Shown here piece by piece: positions 2,084-62,252 of a stretch of DNA of 64,000 bases. The notes under the pieces are model-generated. The model was not told the DNA's origin and searched no databases. It saw only the letters and a list, made by a program, of their open reading frames with translations. Location of the stretch: IMG/VR virus record IMGVR_UViG_3300046003_007892, positions 62,001 through 126,000 of that record. One strand, 5' to 3'. The translations under genes and the position numbers were made by a program. Each line of letters begins with the position of its first letter. The stretch's first letter is position 1.

Positions 2084-2175
2084 TGGTAGCAGACCAGGGA
2101 ATCGAGCCCTGCACGAACCGAGTATCTCTCGGCTGCTAAAGGTGTATAAATCCTTCGTGGTGCCTCACGCCTGCT
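2084..2175 (-). tRNA. atypical tRNA-like RNA, anticodon UAU (Ile), reduced D-arm, long variable arm
   Basis: acceptor AGCAGGC/GUCUGCU, A73, CCA; T-arm CAGGG-CUCGAUU-CCCUG; AC arm AAGG-A-UUUAUAC-A-CCUU; V-arm AGCCGAG/CUCGGUU. Confidence 0.6.
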
Positions 2176-2184
2176 AAATATTGG

Positions 2185-2715
2185 GTGTTTTATACTGTAT
2201 ACCGGATAACAAATCTGACGAACGGTAAGTTTTATGTGGGTGCTCACCAGACTGAGAACCTACGAGACTCATATATGGGAAGTGGTAGAGCCATCAAAGA
2301 AGCTATTCGTAAGCACGGTATAGATAGTTTCTCCAAAGAAATACTCCATGTGTTTGAAACTTCTGAAGAAATGTTCGCCATGGAGCGGTCCATTATTCAA
2401 GAGTGTCTGGGAGATCGAAACAACTACAATATGGGCGTCGGAGGAGCGGGAGGTTTCACATCTGAGATCGCTCGGCGAGGTGCACTAGCGCAAGCTGAGA
2501 AATACGACCTCGCCTCTAAGTCCGAATGGGGGCGAAAAGGAATTGCCGCGTTCCACGCAAACCCAGAGAATATCTCCAAACTTTCCGAGAATGGAAGGAA
2601 GGGTGGCCGGATGAACAAGGGAAAGAAAAAATCCCCCGAGCACATCCGCGCAATCCAGGAAGCCAAGCTTCGGAAAAAGAATGGTGCGCCCGGCCAGACT
2701 CGAACTGACAACTGA
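2185..2715 (+). CDS. GIY-YIG homing endonuclease (Seg-like)
   Basis: VYRITN..NGKFYVG, YMGSG, E and YN..GG motifs; TAAATA-N4-GTG; antisense inside tRNA operon. Confidence 0.9.
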   Translation: MFYTVYRITNLTNGKFYVGAHQTENLRDSYMGSGRAIKEAIRKHGIDSFSKEILHVFETSEEMFAMERSIIQECLGDRNNYNMGVGGAGGFTSEIARRGALAQAEKYDLASKSEWGRKGIAAFHANPENISKLSENGRKGGRMNKGKKKSPEHIRAIQEAKLRKKNGAPGQTRTDN

Positions 2716-19790: not shown

Positions 19791-20324
19791 TCAATGGGAG
19801 GACAGTATCGGCCAGACGATTGGCCACAATGCGATAAGAGACGGGATGGCCACAGCGAAAACAGAAATATACACGGCTCGTTTGGCTGTTCGGTGTGCCC
19901 GCCTCGCTTCCAGATTTGCTGATCGAGCCTCTCTGTTAGCCTCTTCGGCTATGCGGTTCGCTTCATCCGCAAGGTGGATATTTTTTTCTTCCCGCGCCAC
20001 ACGCTCTTTTTCGGCAACCACCTCTGGTGCGTTCGCTGCCATGTTCTCAGCGGTTTGGATTCCGAGATCAGTGAGATAAAATCGGTTGCAAGACCCGTAT
20101 GTCCCGTGGGTCCAAAACCTAGGCTCGTCATTCAACAGACGAGCCTCGTCTCTCAGGCGCACCAGTCCAGCATTTTTGTGTTTGTCGAGAATGAAATCGT
20201 TTGTCTCGTTGTCGGTCGCCCCGCTCTCTAACGAGACCGCGTTCTTTCCGTGCAAGTAAACGATTATCGATTCATCAATTTTGTCCATAAACCCTTCGTA
20301 TCGCAGGAGGAGCATGATAGTCAA
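19791..20324 (-). CDS. membrane-anchored coiled-coil protein
   Basis: EANR repeats then C-terminal TM. Confidence 0.6.
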   Translation of the reverse strand: MTIMLLLRYEGFMDKIDESIIVYLHGKNAVSLESGATDNETNDFILDKHKNAGLVRLRDEARLLNDEPRFWTHGTYGSCNRFYLTDLGIQTAENMAANAPEVVAEKERVAREEKNIHLADEANRIAEEANREARSANLEARRAHRTAKRAVYISVFAVAIPSLIALWPIVWPILSSH

Positions 20325-20331
20325 AATAAAA

Positions 20332-20419
20332 TGGAGACTGCCGGAGGGCTCGAACCTCTGGACTTCCTGCCCGCTCTTTAGTGTCGCCAGTTTAGGAAAC
20401 TGGTGCGGGGACGGCAGTC
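20332..20419 (-). tRNA. atypical D-armless tRNA-like RNA, anticodon CCU (Arg)
   Basis: acceptor GACUGCC/GGCAGUC, U73, CCA; T-loop UUCGAGC; AC arm CCAGU-UUCCUAA-ACUGG; 9 nt in place of D-arm; 27 nt variable region. Confidence 0.55.
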
Positions 20420-20443
20420 GTAGCTCAACGATAAATAGGGAGT

Positions 20444-20977
20444 ATGAATATTGAACTACTCCAAGAATATATCGAGCAGGGTCTGTCCAGCTATCAGATC
20501 GCGGCCAAGACCAATAAGGCGGCGACGACCGTCCGATACTGGATAAAGAAGCACGGCCTCAGCATTTCAAAGCCTGATAAGCCGGATAACCATTGCGCCC
20601 GGTGCGACACCGTCAAGACCAGAGACGACTTCTACCAATACGACACCAAGCGGAGGACGACCTACTGTAAGCCCTGCATGGCGTCGTGGATGAAAGATCG
20701 CTGTCGGAAGCTCAAGGCCCTGGCGGTGGAATATGCGGGAGGCTGCTGCAAGGGCTGCGGCTACGACAAATATCAGGGTGCTCTAGACTTCCATCACCGG
20801 GACCCGGCGCAGAAGGATTTCTCCATTGCTGCCAACATGCGGCGCGGAGACCTCAGCGAGACCATGAAGGCCGAGATCGATAAGTGTGTTCTCCTTTGTG
20901 CTAACTGCCACCGCGAGGCTCACGGCGGACTACGGGATTGGAAGATGGAGGGCCCTGAGAGAATCGAACTCTCGTGA
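20444..20977 (+). CDS. HNH homing endonuclease with HTH and Zn-finger
   Basis: ALDFHHRDP, LLCANCHREAH; TAAATA-N6-ATG; antisense inside tRNA operon. Confidence 0.9.
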   Translation: MNIELLQEYIEQGLSSYQIAAKTNKAATTVRYWIKKHGLSISKPDKPDNHCARCDTVKTRDDFYQYDTKRRTTYCKPCMASWMKDRCRKLKALAVEYAGGCCKGCGYDKYQGALDFHHRDPAQKDFSIAANMRRGDLSETMKAEIDKCVLLCANCHREAHGGLRDWKMEGPERIELS

Positions 20978-21019
20978 AGTGATTAAAAGTCACCTATTCT
21001 GCCATTGAATTAAGGGCCC
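20946..21019 (-). tRNA. tRNA-Lys(UUU), canonical length
   Basis: loop CUUUUAA, U73, CCA. Confidence 0.9.
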
Positions 21020-21022
21020 ATC

Positions 21023-21116
21023 TGGAGAACGCGGTGGGACTCGAACCCACGGGGTCAGGCTTGCACCTGTTACGGGCTTAAAAGGCCCGGCCTCTCGCCA
21101 CTGAGGTGACGCGTCC
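21023..21116 (-). tRNA. tRNA-Lys(UUU) with long variable arm
   Basis: 94 nt; CGGGC-CUUUUAA-GCCCG; V-arm CAGGU-GCAA-GCCUG; U73, CCA. Confidence 0.8.
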
Positions 21117-21130
21117 GTTCAGAAGAAACT

Positions 21131-21217
21131 TGGAGGATTGGATGGGACTCGAACCCATGATGAGCTTACGCTAGCGGGGTAAGAACCCGCGCCTCTCGCC
21201 GCTGAGGTGACCAATCC
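21131..21217 (-). tRNA. tRNA-Lys(CUU) with long variable arm
   Basis: 87 nt; GCGGG-UUCUUAC-CCCGC; V-arm AGC-GUAA-GCU; U73, CCA. Confidence 0.8.
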
Positions 21218-21235
21218 GAGAAGTGGTGTGGGTGG

Positions 21236-21311
21236 TGGTGAACGCGCTCGGGTTCGAACCGAGGACCAACAGATTAAGAGTCTGTCGCTCTACCAACTGA
21301 GCTACGCGTCC
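21236..21311 (-). tRNA. tRNA-Lys(CUU), canonical
   Basis: loop CUCUUAA, A73, CCA. Confidence 0.93.
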
Positions 21312-50665: not shown

Positions 50666-51040
50666 TCAGCTAGAAATTTTGATTTCTACTTCTTTCGGAA
50701 AGTTGATCTCGTCTTCGTCGAAAGCCAGTCTGATTTTCGCAGCTTGTTTGTCTGAGAACGTTGCCACCGAGCCGTCAGCGTTGTAGCCGAAGTTGATCGG
50801 GAAGCACTGAATAGCCCGCAAGCGGGCTTTGACCTCTTTGAACTCAGAAGCGTTGAAAACGCCGGGGAACTCAACGATGGTGATGCCAGGACGAACGCGA
50901 GGGGAGAACTCATTCCACCCCGTCAGAACCTGGAAGGAACTCCGTGTGCGACGACGAACAGGCGCGTTCGACCGAGCGATCACGCGCTCGTGCATGCGCC
51001 GGTCAAAGCTGGCCTGCTTGCTGCTCCACGTCGATTTCAT
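50666..51040 (-). CDS. hypothetical protein
   Basis: MKSTWSS, ATGA coupling. Confidence 0.6.
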   Translation of the reverse strand: MKSTWSSKQASFDRRMHERVIARSNAPVRRRTRSSFQVLTGWNEFSPRVRPGITIVEFPGVFNASEFKEVKARLRAIQCFPINFGYNADGSVATFSDKQAAKIRLAFDEDEINFPKEVEIKISS

Positions 51041-52233
51041 TCCGTGACCTCGTTCCAACCCCAGCGGACGCCGCCCCAAAGGTGGCGCACGAGATCAACG
51101 CGAGTAGCCGAACCCAGATGCTTGGCCACGACCCGGTGTCCAACCTCGACCGGGTCTTGCCCGTCGAAGATCGAGAACATCATCGTCCTGTCGAGTCCGT
51201 CCACGTCCTTGATCGCCAGCGCGAGGTCCCGCTTGGAATATCCGGCATACTGCTCGGCGACGCGTTTGGCCAGAGCCTCCATGTAGGTCGAGATGCCTTT
51301 CTGGACCGCGTCCGCGTAATCGACCACGCGCTGACGGTCGTCTGCCGCCAGCAGGGGCAGGGTGTCGTCGATCTTGTCCTCAAGGATGAGGGCCAAGACG
51401 TTCTTCTCGCTTGAGAGGTTGTCCTTGGCGGCATGCATGATGCAATATTCGTCGGCCTTGACCTTCAGCTTGTGGCCGTTCTGGAACGCGATCACCCAGC
51501 CCTCGGTCTCGACGAGGTCGCGGGTTTCGGTGACGAAATCGTTTACGTCGTGCAGGCTCCCAGGACGTCGCTGGACAAGCTCAACGCGGTGGAAGTCGCA
51601 CAGGTCGCCAAGATACCCGAAGTCGCTGTAGACCCCCGTATCGTTGTCGCGGATGGCCAGCAAGACCAGACGGTCTACCGGGTGGTCGATGACGATGCGC
51701 TGTTGGCGCGAACACCATTCGAAGATCGGGGTTTTGTTTTCGCTCACGCATTCTCGCGCAAGCCCCTCGTAGCGGAGATTGCGTTCAACGAACCGATCAA
51801 CCTGGAGGGCAATATCGGTGAGACCCATTTTGGTCGCCCACCGCATTCCACCAGACGTCGGCAATGGAGTGATCATGCTACCGTCCATCTTTTCTAGGAT
51901 GTCACAGTTTTCGCTCCAGTCAACATTTTGTGTAAGGACTTCCGGGCGTTCGTTGAGGTTGAAGAACTTGTGGAACTTCCGGTTCACTACTTTGCCAGTC
52001 GCCTTTGAGAAAGTCAGGCCACGGCACTCGCGCAGAATCGCATACTCGCGATCTTCCTCGCGGTCGCCAGAGAACGCCGGGAAAGTTCCAGAGAAACTGA
52101 TCAGGTAGTTGAAGAGGACAAAGTCGCCACGGTCGGCTTCAATGAAGACCTGGGTGCCCAGCCGGGCGTTGTGGCGCGCAACTACTCCGCTGACCTCAGC
52201 CAGGGACATGTCATGGGGAAATTCGTAAAACAT
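51037..52233 (-). CDS. T4 Rnl1-type RNA ligase
   Basis: ECRGL, HKFFN, EKMDGS, EGWV, KVK. Confidence 0.9.
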   Translation of the reverse strand: MFYEFPHDMSLAEVSGVVARHNARLGTQVFIEADRGDFVLFNYLISFSGTFPAFSGDREEDREYAILRECRGLTFSKATGKVVNRKFHKFFNLNERPEVLTQNVDWSENCDILEKMDGSMITPLPTSGGMRWATKMGLTDIALQVDRFVERNLRYEGLARECVSENKTPIFEWCSRQQRIVIDHPVDRLVLLAIRDNDTGVYSDFGYLGDLCDFHRVELVQRRPGSLHDVNDFVTETRDLVETEGWVIAFQNGHKLKVKADEYCIMHAAKDNLSSEKNVLALILEDKIDDTLPLLAADDRQRVVDYADAVQKGISTYMEALAKRVAEQYAGYSKRDLALAIKDVDGLDRTMMFSIFDGQDPVEVGHRVVAKHLGSATRVDLVRHLWGGVRWGWNEVTE

Positions 52234-52277: not shown

Positions 52278-52574
52278 CTAGTTGGGCAGAAGGGTGTCTG
52301 CGTGACGGTTGAAGAAATCGTATTCCTCGGTGAGTTGGAATATCAGGGCGTCACCTGGGTCATCGAACCGCATTGAGATGACGCGATCTTCGAGGTTCTC
52401 CACCTCCCACCCGTGGCGGCAGTTTCGGCCGCACCAGTTCTGGAGCAAGGCTTGGAAGAGGAGGGCGGTTACGATGTCGATTTTGGAGCGACGGATATCC
52501 AGCCCGAACTCGTAGCCGGGGCCCGACTCTCTTGCAGGGATGCCCGCCGTAGACGGGAAGCACGCCATGTCCAT
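52278..52574 (-). CDS. late hypothetical protein
   Basis: TAAATA-N4-ATG; ends MRFDDPGDALIFQLT. Confidence 0.65.
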   Translation of the reverse strand: MDMACFPSTAGIPARESGPGYEFGLDIRRSKIDIVTALLFQALLQNWCGRNCRHGWEVENLEDRVISMRFDDPGDALIFQLTEEYDFFNRHADTLLPN

Positions 52575-52589
52575 GCGGTATTTAGGCGC

Positions 52590-52628
52590 AAAACAACAGG
52601 TTGGTTCCCGATGTGGGAGCCAACCTGT
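52590..52628 (-). terminator. intrinsic terminator
   Basis: CAGGTTGGCTCCC/GGGAACCAACCTG then TTGTTTT. Confidence 0.75.
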
Positions 52629-52681
52629 GCTTTATCTCGCCATGGTCGTCGGAAAGACAGAAAACGCCCGCGTTGGTTGGA

Positions 52682-56432: not shown

Positions 56433-56719
56433 CGGAGATGCTCCATCACGGTCGCGAGTTCAGGGAGGATGCGGGCCTCGGCGGCATCGTTTTCGGCCCA
56501 GGTCGTCGGATAGGAAACGTATTCAGATAGGCGAATCCGCCATCCGTTTCCTGAAACATTTTTCGGTTCCACGGTGAGGCGCGGTGCGAACAGGTTTGTG
56601 AGACGAGCGGGCGGGCCGTAGCCGGACCATATGTCGTGTGCGCCCTCAAAGCGGGGGGCGTAGTGGGAACAGATGGCCTCTACAGCGGCCACCTCCTCGG
56701 GTGTGGACGGGCGTATCAT
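56429..56719 (-). CDS. hypothetical protein
   Basis: 96 aa, coupled. Confidence 0.6.
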   Translation of the reverse strand: MIRPSTPEEVAAVEAICSHYAPRFEGAHDIWSGYGPPARLTNLFAPRLTVEPKNVSGNGWRIRLSEYVSYPTTWAENDAAEARILPELATVMEHLR

Positions 56720-58068
56720 GCGCTCCTCCAGACCGTTCCCTCGGGCTTGTCTTCTAGTACGACACCCATGCTTTCGATCTTGGCCCTCAAGCGGTCAGCC
56801 TCGGCCCAGTCCTTATTGGCCCGCGCCGAGTTGCGTTCTTGAATGAGTTCCCAAATGTCGAACATCGGCCGGGTGTCGGTCTTGCGTTGACGCCAGCGGG
56901 TCGGGTCGGACTCCAACAAGCCCATCATGTTGGCCGACCGGAGAAGCTTATCGACGCTCTCTTCGCCGCGCGAAACCCGACTGGCCAGATCGTGCAGGGC
57001 CGCCAGTGCACCGGGGGTGTTGAGATCGTCCTGAAGGGCCCCCAGAACGGATTCATCGACGTCCGGGGGTCCGGCGACCTTTCCGTTCAGAACAGCCGTG
57101 TAGAGGCCGTTCAGAGCCTTCTCCGCCTCTTCCATGCGGGCTTCGGTATAGTCGATGGCCGCTCTATAGTGGGTGGAGAGCAGGAAGTAGCGCACGACCT
57201 CGCCGTCGAGATCGCTTTTCATGAGTTCAGCCAAGGTGACGAAGTTGCCCTGGCTCTTCGACATCTTCTTGCCGTCTACGGTCAGCATGCCGTTGTGGAG
57301 CCAGTAGTTGGCCAGCGGCTCACCGTGCGCGCATTCCGACTGCGCGATCTCGTTCTCGTGGTGGGGGAATATGAGATCGGAGCCGCCGCCGTGAATGTCG
57401 ATGGTCGGGCCGAATATGCGGGCGATCATGGCCGAGCATTCGATATGCCAGCCCGGACGTCCCATTCCCCACGGCGAGGTCCAGACAGGCTCACCCGGTT
57501 CCTTGCCGGGTTTCCACAAGACGAAGTCGGCGGGGTCGCGCTTGTATGAGCCGGGCTCGACGCGGGCCCCGGCTTGGAGGCCGAGAAGGTTTTGTTTGGA
57601 GAGCTTGCCGTGTTGGGCGTGGCTCTTCACCGAGAAGAGAACGTGCCCATCCGCCACGTAGGCGTGACCCTTGTCGATCAGCGTGGTGATCATCTCGATC
57701 ATGACGCCGATATGCGTGGTCGCTCGGGGGTTCAAAGTTGGGTCGAGGTTCCCCAGCATCCGCATCACCGAATGGTAGACCTGGATGGTCTCATTGGTGA
57801 GTTCACTGATGCTGATGTTGCGCTCTTTTGCGCGCTCGATGATCTTGTCGTCGATGTCCGTGTAGTTGCGCGCGAAGAAGACGCTGTCCTCCCCATAGGT
57901 GTGGCGAAGGAGACGGAACAGGATATCGAACGCGGCGGCGGGGCGACCATTTCCCAGGTGGGGGTGGTCATAAACCGTGGGGCCGCACTGGTACACGGTC
58001 ACCCGGTTGGGGTGCAGGGGAGTGAACTCGCGTTTCTCTCCCGTCATCGTGTCGTGCAGCTTGATCAT
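56716..58068 (-). CDS. cysS: cysteinyl-tRNA synthetase
   Basis: YQCGPTVY, HLGN, GRPGWHIECS, FPHHENE, KMSKS, anticodon-binding helix. Confidence 0.95.
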   Translation of the reverse strand: MIKLHDTMTGEKREFTPLHPNRVTVYQCGPTVYDHPHLGNGRPAAAFDILFRLLRHTYGEDSVFFARNYTDIDDKIIERAKERNISISELTNETIQVYHSVMRMLGNLDPTLNPRATTHIGVMIEMITTLIDKGHAYVADGHVLFSVKSHAQHGKLSKQNLLGLQAGARVEPGSYKRDPADFVLWKPGKEPGEPVWTSPWGMGRPGWHIECSAMIARIFGPTIDIHGGGSDLIFPHHENEIAQSECAHGEPLANYWLHNGMLTVDGKKMSKSQGNFVTLAELMKSDLDGEVVRYFLLSTHYRAAIDYTEARMEEAEKALNGLYTAVLNGKVAGPPDVDESVLGALQDDLNTPGALAALHDLASRVSRGEESVDKLLRSANMMGLLESDPTRWRQRKTDTRPMFDIWELIQERNSARANKDWAEADRLRAKIESMGVVLEDKPEGTVWRSA

Positions 58069-58248
58069 CTGATCTCCAAAATACGGGTGGCCCCGGACAA
58101 CTCGACCACCCGCCGCATACTTTAATACACCCGTTGCCGCGTTGCCGCGCAGCATCCCGACCCAGCATTGAGCCGAAGACCCGGCGACGGGGCTCATTTT
58201 CACGTCCCCGTACCTTCCCACTATCATGGGAACTATTTTTTGCAAAGC

Positions 58249-58283
58249 AAAAGGGCCGGACTGGTTTCCCAATCCGACCCTTT
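58249..58283 (-). terminator. intrinsic terminator
   Basis: GGGTCGGATTGG-GAAA-CCAGTCCGGCCC-TTTT. Confidence 0.8.
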
Positions 58284-61919: not shown

Positions 61920-62252
61920 TTATCTAAGGAGCAGCGAGGCGAGGTGATCGGTCTTCTCTATCGGGACAGATGCCGATTCGACCCGATCAATTTTCAGGAG
62001 GGTCTGGTGGCTGAGATAAAACGAGATGCAGTCCGTGTGGGTCTCGAAGTTGACGGTGAAAATCAGGAAAGCGTCATCGGCCACGGAGATGACGTCAATG
62101 TCCTTGAACTGATACCACAAGGTCTGCCCGCGATACCTAGAGCGTACTTCGCAGAAATCTTTCACGCTGCCGGTCATATAGAACCGGTAGGCAAACGGTT
62201 CTCCGGTCTCGAACTTCACTGGCCGACCATCTTGATGTGGCTGATTCGACAT
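61920..62252 (-). CDS. hypothetical protein
   Basis: 110 aa. Confidence 0.6.
   Translation of the reverse strand: MSNQPHQDGRPVKFETGEPFAYRFYMTGSVKDFCEVRSRYRGQTLWYQFKDIDVISVADDAFLIFTVNFETHTDCISFYLSHQTLLKIDRVESASVPIEKTDHLASLLLR

Follow-up and report, generated by a model that had tools for sequence, protein, structure and literature searches.

Can a gene with no D hairpin in the usual place nevertheless encode a tRNA? The question is raised by an 88-nt tRNA-like sequence with anticodon CCU in a giant phage from lake water. The window analysed here is a 64,000-nt stretch (positions 62,001 to 126,000) of the 240-kb IMG/VR virus record IMGVR_UViG_3300046003_007892 (58% G+C, estimated 45% complete), a record found in lake-water metagenomes. 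A first-pass annotation, made from the sequence alone, had described the RNA as D-armless, with a perfect 7-bp acceptor stem, CCA, T-loop and 5-bp anticodon stem with a 7-nt loop, a 9-nt linker in place of the D-arm, and a 27-nt variable region whose GCGGG can pair with CCCGC of the linker. On inspection of the sequence every item of this description is present, and the observation is confirmed.

Anatomy of the RNA

The RNA is encoded on the minus strand, and its parts and immediate surroundings are as follows.
20332..20419 (-), the whole 88-nt tRNA-like RNA, 5' end at 20419, 3' CCA at 20334-20332
20412..20419 (-), acceptor 5' strand GACUGCC(G), giving 7 bp, or 8 bp if G8 pairs with C77; it is followed by UC
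20405..20409 (-), 5' strand CCCGC of a helix we call helix X, one nucleotide (A16) before the anticodon stem
20387..20403 (-), anticodon arm CCAGU-UUCCUAA-ACUGG, with U33, anticodon CCU at 20396-20394, and A37
20375..20386 (-), 12-nt bulge CGACACUAAAGA
20370..20374 (-), helix X 3' strand GCGGG
20359..20369 (-), D-loop-like segment CAGGAAGUCCA (candidate G18 G19 A20 A21 = GGAA)
20344..20358 (-), T arm GAGG-UUCGAGC-CCUC, 4 bp; A61 and C77 would form a fifth, mismatched pair
20332..20343 (-), acceptor 3' strand (C)GGCAGUC, discriminator U, encoded CCA
20444..20977 (+), HNH homing endonuclease gene (PHROG 2255, E 4e-34), divergent from the RNA across a 25-nt gap, its 3' end overlapping tRNA-Lys(UUU)
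20946..21311 (-), upstream tRNA-Lys cluster (CUU; CUU with long arm; UUU with long arm; UUU)

The acceptor stem is Watson-Crick throughout, the T arm has G53, U54 U55 C56, A58 and C61, and between acceptor and anticodon arm lies only the 9-nt linker GUCCCCGCA, with no D hairpin. The minimum-free-energy fold uses the CCCGC/GCGGG helix (-31.8 kcal/mol, z = -2.1, with 5 of 200 shuffles folding as well), although an alternative, weak local hairpin read from the sequence, GGGC-AGGAA-GUCC, competes with it. The description requires one correction, in that the T stem is 4 bp plus an A-C mismatch at 49-65. The same C pairs with G8 in the fold, so the molecule is drawn better with an 8-bp acceptor and a 4-bp T stem, and in this 8/4 drawing all 21-22 base pairs are Watson-Crick, with no G-U pair and no mismatch.

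Standard finders miss the RNA: ARAGORN does not call it in bacterial, mitochondrial or lowered-threshold modes, and the Rfam tRNA model RF00005 (threshold 29 bits) reports it neither at the gathering threshold nor at E <= 10. To test whether the resemblance to tRNA could be due to chance, we scanned for a combined signature (7-bp acceptor, T stem of at least 4 bp, TTYRA T-loop, CCA, and an anticodon-like hairpin with U33 and R37). This occurs 15 times in the 240-kb record, namely in the 14 ARAGORN tRNAs that encode CCA and in this RNA, and 0 times in 20 shuffled genomes. The 5-bp linker/variable helix is, on its own, only weakly unusual (we estimate about 0.05-0.15 by chance).

The genomic position is also as the first-pass annotation had claimed, that is, last in its operon and just past an endonuclease gene, as for a second odd RNA with anticodon UAU. 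The CCU RNA lies downstream of, and on the same strand as, the four tRNA-Lys genes, from which the opposite-strand HNH gene separates it, and the next minus-strand gene starts about 40 nt downstream. The UAU RNA (about 2172-2085) likewise follows an opposite-strand GIY-YIG gene (2185-2715).

A class of phage arginine tRNA-like RNAs with the same layout

Is the layout peculiar to this phage? A search of viral contigs for the exact 17-nt anticodon arm returned 22 loci, nearly all phage tRNA-Arg(CCU) genes; most were ordinary, but several had the same odd layout. A second pattern, a D-loop-like motif placed right before a T arm, returned more than 118 loci, from which we extracted 62 distinct RNAs of 77-82 nt. 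ARAGORN calls none of them, and all 62 carry arginine anticodons (UCU 47, CCU 10, CCG 3, GCG 1, ACG 1).

The alignment of these sequences shows, in order, a 7-bp acceptor stem, U8 (61 of 62 sequences) and A9 (62 of 62), a 3-4-bp helix whose two strands flank the anticodon arm, with the 5' strand 0-1 nt from the anticodon stem, a bulge of 2-11 nt, and, after the 3' strand of that helix, an invariant U-A..U-G-G-A..A segment followed by a canonical T arm. RNAalifold predicts the enclosing helix on its own. The helix is 96% paired, and all three pairs show changes on both sides, whereas controls in which the partners were slid by 1-3 columns pair in at most 46% of cells, counted over the whole structure. 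The invariant segment reads like a complete D-loop (A14, R15, Y16, Y17, G18, G19, A20, .., A21), and members found without forcing the motif still have UAAU(N)GGA. The R15 position covaries with the last base before the T stem (A:U 54, G:G 6), which is what a Levitt pair would do.

One member matches 268 GenBank phage records, including Felix O1-like, rV5-like, PBECO4-like giant, Klebsiella Vi1-like and T5-like, and Streptomyces phages (e.g. Klebsiella phage KB57, 64093-64174). The copies are mostly unannotated, a few being labelled "tRNA-OTHER" or "tRNA-TERM", and they sit inside tRNA arrays; some lie in bacterial assemblies, probably in prophages. The Rfam tRNA model gives class members 27-35 bits, around its 29-bit threshold. 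In Felix O1 the gene lies at AF320576.1:25951-26032, and the Felix O1 genome paper lists no tRNA-Arg(UCU) while remarking that one would have been expected for the over-used AGA codon (PMC3185647). Literature searches, which did not cover subscription journals and so cannot exclude a prior description, found no account of such phage tRNAs.

Is the CCU RNA a member of the class?

If the CCU RNA belongs to this class, it should share both its topology and its sequence motifs. The topology is shared: an arginine anticodon, no D hairpin before the anticodon arm, a helix strand one nucleotide before the anticodon stem, its partner after a bulge, and a GGA-containing segment between that helix and the T stem. 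A full-length covariance model of the class aligns the RNA end to end, placing CGC/GCG on the class helix (23.7 bits), but this model scores canonical tRNAs as high, because the acceptor and T arms dominate, and does not separate the class from ordinary tRNAs. We therefore built a core-only model, without acceptor and T arm, which also aligns helix X to the class helix and for which the RNA is the top hit in the window, at 16.0 bits with a non-significant E-value of 0.13 and only 3.3 bits above the anticodon arm of a canonical tRNA-Arg (12.7 bits); the D-loop part does not align in this model.

At the sequence level, a 20-nt core around the anticodon arm, ACCAGUUUCCUAAACUGGCG, is identical to that of a class member (locus L015), the bulge starts with CG and contains UAA as in the 82-nt subclass (consensus CGUUAAYC), and the acceptor resembles that of the GC-rich members L109, L110 and L120 (GCUGCCG) with one extra pair. 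However, the RNA departs from the class in several respects. Its helix is 5 bp against 3-4, its bulge 12 nt against 2-11, and its linker GUC (UC after an 8-bp acceptor) against the invariant UA(U), so that A9 is C. Its D-loop is CA-GGAA-GUCCA against U-A-R-N-U-GGA-N-N-A-U, the A, the GG and the A being kept while the 3 nt between A14 and G18 are missing, and it can be drawn 8/4 against 7/5.

No sibling of this subtype was found in the collections searched, which we could scan for the RNA only with exact patterns. The neighbouring protein (19791-20324) led to none in viral contigs, nor in metagenome contigs, where the one weak match (locus L176) was irrelevant; the HNH protein led to none in viral contigs; and the pattern CAGGAAG-N7-GGTTCGARNC gave 44 chance matches and no tRNA. 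Nothing therefore shows selection on the particular features of this RNA. The nearest relatives of the phage, identified through protein 56716-58272, share 41-47% protein identity. One of these, which we call G001, has a canonical tRNA-Arg(CCU) at 52564-52639 beside its tRNA-Arg(UCU), and no odd CCU copy near its tRNA-Lys cluster. This gene shares with the RNA the anticodon loop UUCCUAA, the T-loop UUCGAGC, the encoded CCA and the D-loop letters CAGGAAG, but it has a D hairpin (GCUC-AACAGGAA-GAGC) before the anticodon arm, a 5-nt variable loop and G73, lies at another locus, and has unrelated stem sequences. The first-pass annotation had set lack of processing, together with relatives with an intact D-arm, as grounds for reading the RNA as a simple deletion pseudogene. 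In that simple form the idea is rejected, since the 27-nt region and the unrelated stems cannot come from the relative's gene by deleting a D-arm.

A permuted tRNA core as a tentative interpretation

Our preferred reading, to which we assign a probability of about 0.5, is that the RNA is a non-cloverleaf, AGG-decoding tRNA-Arg(CCU), a divergent member or derivative of the phage class, which we call the permuted-core tRNA-Arg. In this view the D-stem of the class is not a local hairpin: its two strands flank the anticodon arm, and the D-loop follows the 3' strand and runs straight into the T stem, giving the order acceptor, U8 A9, [22-25], 26, anticodon arm, bulge, [10-13], D-loop, T arm, acceptor. 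Such an order could keep the usual stacked D/anticodon helix, the elbow contacts between D-loop and T-loop, and the ArgRS determinants A20 and C35. The RNA would have this topology in an extreme form, with an 8-bp acceptor and 4-bp T stem, a 5-bp GC helix, a 12-nt bulge and a shortened D-loop (CA-GGAA), and would be transcribed with the tRNA-Lys operon, processed by RNase P and 3' nucleases, charged with arginine by the host ArgRS and used to read AGG. What the analysis demonstrates is the sequence anatomy, the existence and covariation of the class, and the common topology, whereas the three-dimensional mimicry, transcription, processing, charging and decoding are inferred.

The interpretation in the first-pass annotation is therefore supported only in part. 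It was right that this is a tRNA-like gene with anticodon CCU and no D hairpin in the canonical position, that the linker/variable pairing is the key structural feature, and that the gene sits next to a homing endonuclease gene as the UAU RNA does, but in our reading the D-arm is relocated rather than lost. Its further claim, that absence of A20 together with U73 makes ArgRS charging doubtful, is not supported. In the class, invariant G18 G19 A20 lies after the anticodon arm and just before the T arm. The RNA has CAGGAAG at that place, the same 7-mer as C16-A17-G18-G19-A20-A21-G22 of the canonical tRNA-Arg(CCU) of G001, so an A20 equivalent is plausibly present, and U73 occurs in 9 of 62 class members.

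Several further observations bear on function. AGG is used at 5.1 per 1000 codons in the phage and no other CCU tRNA is among the 24 called, though with the record only about 45% complete a canonical one may exist elsewhere. The phage is present in 22 DNA sequencing runs from lake water, with no RNA run listed, and in these the RNA is identical in samples from 2020 to 2025, which establishes presence and stability but leaves no natural variation to read. E. coli EF-Tu, ribosome and HisRS accept an engineered D-armless tRNA without adaptation (PMC11551756).

The main rival, which we consider unlikely though far from excluded, is that the RNA is an inactive relic, a former permuted-core (or other) tRNA-Arg gene that lost its D-loop motifs and U8-A9, perhaps through repeated cleavage and repair or immunity mutations linked to the adjacent homing endonuclease. 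This would account for its being a singleton, for the missing class invariants, for the A-C mismatch in the 7/5 drawing, for the silence of RF00005 where class members score 27-35 bits, for the proximity of both odd RNAs to homing endonuclease genes, and for the canonical CCU tRNA in the nearest relative. Against this, every helix is intact in the 8/4 drawing and the acceptor stem, anticodon loop, T-loop and CCA are perfect, whereas random decay should hit stems as well; the changes are confined to single-stranded parts and to length variation of a kind the class tolerates (bulge 2-11 nt, helix 3-5 bp), and the sequence is stable across samples. We read this as a sign of continued selection on structure, though in the absence of homologues and population variation this remains inference.

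Less likely still is a structured RNA with a role other than elongation: a decoy for a host nuclease that targets tRNA-Arg, an RNase P/RNase Z processing signal separating the tRNA operon from the downstream mRNA, or a regulator of, or promoter region for, the divergent HNH gene. The anticodon arm is kept exactly like that of many phage tRNA-Arg(CCU) genes while the core differs, the phage carries an Rnl1-type RNA ligase and duplicated, oddly shaped tRNA-Lys genes, which suggests pressure from tRNA-cleaving defences, and the RNA lies close to both flanking genes. However, no direct evidence supports any of these roles, the encoded CCA, perfect acceptor stem and GGAA motif are what a chargeable tRNA needs, and the related class shows arginine anticodons only and fills missing AGA/AGG decoders. 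Charging by SerRS or another synthetase through the long extra region, as in an (8/4) allo-tRNA-like or type-II-like tRNA, with missense reading of AGG, is very unlikely: an 8/4 drawing is possible, (8/4) tRNAs occur in alpha-proteobacterial phages, (9/3) allo-tRNAs carry AGA/AGG anticodons (PMC5389517), and this phage lineage has several long-arm tRNAs with Lys, Ile, Asn and Cys anticodons, but there is no D-arm and no stable variable-arm hairpin, the extra region is used for helix X in the minimum-free-energy fold, and the topology matches the all-Arg class. Least likely is a chance resemblance or part of a coding region; a 57-aa plus-strand ORF (20281-20454) overlaps the RNA, but it is short, overlaps the HNH start and was not supported by anything seen, and the tRNA signature is absent from shuffled genomes and otherwise marks only true tRNAs.

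Comparison with other non-canonical tRNAs

D-armless mitochondrial tRNAs (mammalian mt-tRNA-Ser(AGY), nematode mt-tRNA-Ser) also have no D hairpin but a connector plus an extended anticodon helix, and are translationally active (PMC7609411). They are, however, organellar, have lost the G18G19/T-loop elbow motifs and need adapted factors, whereas here the T-loop is canonical, a GG motif is kept, and the setting is a phage of bacteria. The (8/4) and (9/3) tRNAs and allo-tRNAs (Mukai et al. 2017, PMC5389517) share a 12-bp acceptor/T branch, split 8/4, but allo-tRNAs keep a D-arm and a long variable-arm hairpin and resemble tRNA-Ser, and the CCU RNA has neither arm. The D-armless 'mini HisT' that works in E. 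coli (Edelmann et al. 2024, PMC11551756) is artificial and its use was limited by PNPase degradation. In the circularly permuted tRNA genes of red and green algae the whole gene is permuted and the mature tRNA is made canonical through a circular intermediate; in the phage class the ends are normal and only the inner core would be permuted, so the mature RNA itself must be non-cloverleaf.

All known bacterial tRNAs are stated to be cloverleaves (PMC11551756), and a natural, widespread and covarying tRNA-Arg class with a rearranged core would be the first counter-example outside organelles, present in easily grown phages of E. coli, Salmonella and Klebsiella. It would explain "missing" AGA/AGG tRNAs in phage genomes, Felix O1 being a case in point, would reveal a blind spot of tRNAscan-SE, ARAGORN and Rfam annotation that has persisted for more than 20 years, would give a ready test bed for how ArgRS, EF-Tu, RNase P, modification enzymes and the ribosome read tRNA shape, and would offer naturally shape-distinct tRNAs for orthogonal translation. 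It is possible, though we hold this only tentatively, that bacterial ribosomes use this class as natural non-cloverleaf elongator tRNAs, that the CCU RNA is a working member, and that the class may owe its spread to properties conferred by the odd core, such as escape from defences that cut or modify tRNA. The CCU RNA marks the outer edge of what this layout tolerates, or else shows how such genes die.

Association with HNH genes

The HNH protein beside the CCU RNA is 44% identical to the Felix O1/warpig HNH that abuts the class member of that phage, which counts in favour of membership of the class, although this HNH family lives in tRNA clusters generally. The idea that the HNH gene and the permuted tRNA travel as one cassette was rejected: homologues occur in the tRNA clusters of 6 of the 62 class loci, but directly beside the class member in only 2, and in different orientations.

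Other unusual tRNA genes of the window and its relatives

Two further tRNA genes of the tRNA-Lys cluster depart from the usual form, each sitting beside a canonical isoacceptor:
window 21023-21116 (-), tRNA-Lys(UUU) of 94 nt
window 21131-21217 (-), tRNA-Lys(CUU) of 87 nt

Both have long variable arms and a type-II-like D-arm, and the long UUU copy shares the acceptor stem GGACGCG with the canonical tRNA-Lys(CUU). These genes are conserved, with compensatory changes, in G001 (the nearest relative of the phage), and they hit phiCbK-like Caulobacter phages, where they are annotated as tRNA-Lys, Leu or Ser. One possibility is that they are a route to escape tRNA-Lys-specific nucleases; alternatively, they may be mischarged. 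A gene for an Rnl1-type RNA ligase, the T4 tRNA-repair type, is also present (window 51037-52233 (-); PHROG 562, E 8e-64), and this fits a host with anticodon nucleases.

Further unusual tRNA genes lie outside the window, on contig C1 of genome record G000:
G000:C1:40741-40829 (-), tRNA-Asn(GUU) of 89 nt
G000:C1:141056-141146 (+), tRNA-Cys(GCA) of 91 nt
G000:C1:139419-139487 (+), a 69-nt tRNA-like RNA
G000:C1:139655-139730 (+), a tRNA called CUA/'Pyl' by ARAGORN

The tRNA-Asn and tRNA-Cys genes also have long extra arms. Several isoacceptors are duplicated (Asp, Arg-ACG, Ile-GAU). The 69-nt RNA has a perfect acceptor stem, T arm and CCA but an unclear core, and the anticodon loop of the tRNA beside it can be read as the 9 nt CUUCUAACA.

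The RNA with anticodon UAU (window 2085-2172 (-)) is also odd, but it is not of the same architecture as the CCU RNA. It has a 7-bp acceptor stem, T-loop CUCGAUU, a weak 3-bp D region, a long variable-arm hairpin and an A-A pair at the top of the anticodon stem. In its place, G001 has an 89-nt tRNA-Ile(UAU) with a normal D-arm.

Homing endonuclease genes in tRNA operons

Two endonuclease genes lie antisense inside tRNA operons of the window:
window 2185-2715 (+), a GIY-YIG gene
window 20444-20977 (+), an HNH homing endonuclease gene

The last 10 or so codons of each overlap the 3' end of a tRNA gene (tRNA-Met and tRNA-Lys, respectively), and the HNH family recurs inside tRNA clusters of unrelated phages. 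In the classic Salmonella phage Felix O1, an unannotated permuted-core tRNA-Arg(UCU), identified from its sequence, is overlapped by ORF100/HNH (AF320576.1:25951-26032, corresponding to 1499-1580 of L345, our Felix O1 locus). This gene fills the AGA tRNA that the genome paper found missing.

Related architectures in viral contigs

A third architecture of phage tRNA-Arg(CCU), with the same anticodon arm, is seen in three viral contigs (L006, L012 and L014). Here a D-arm in the normal position, with loop UAAUUGGAU, is combined with a long variable-arm hairpin (UAUCAC-UAA-GUGAUA). The letters of that hairpin resemble the helix strands of L011, a permuted member. This architecture may be an evolutionary intermediate. 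Phage contigs that carry permuted tRNA-Arg genes also carry, within large tRNA arrays, a GOLLD RNA (176 bits) and a tmRNA (94 bits), at L015:5748-6218 and L178:11456-11815.
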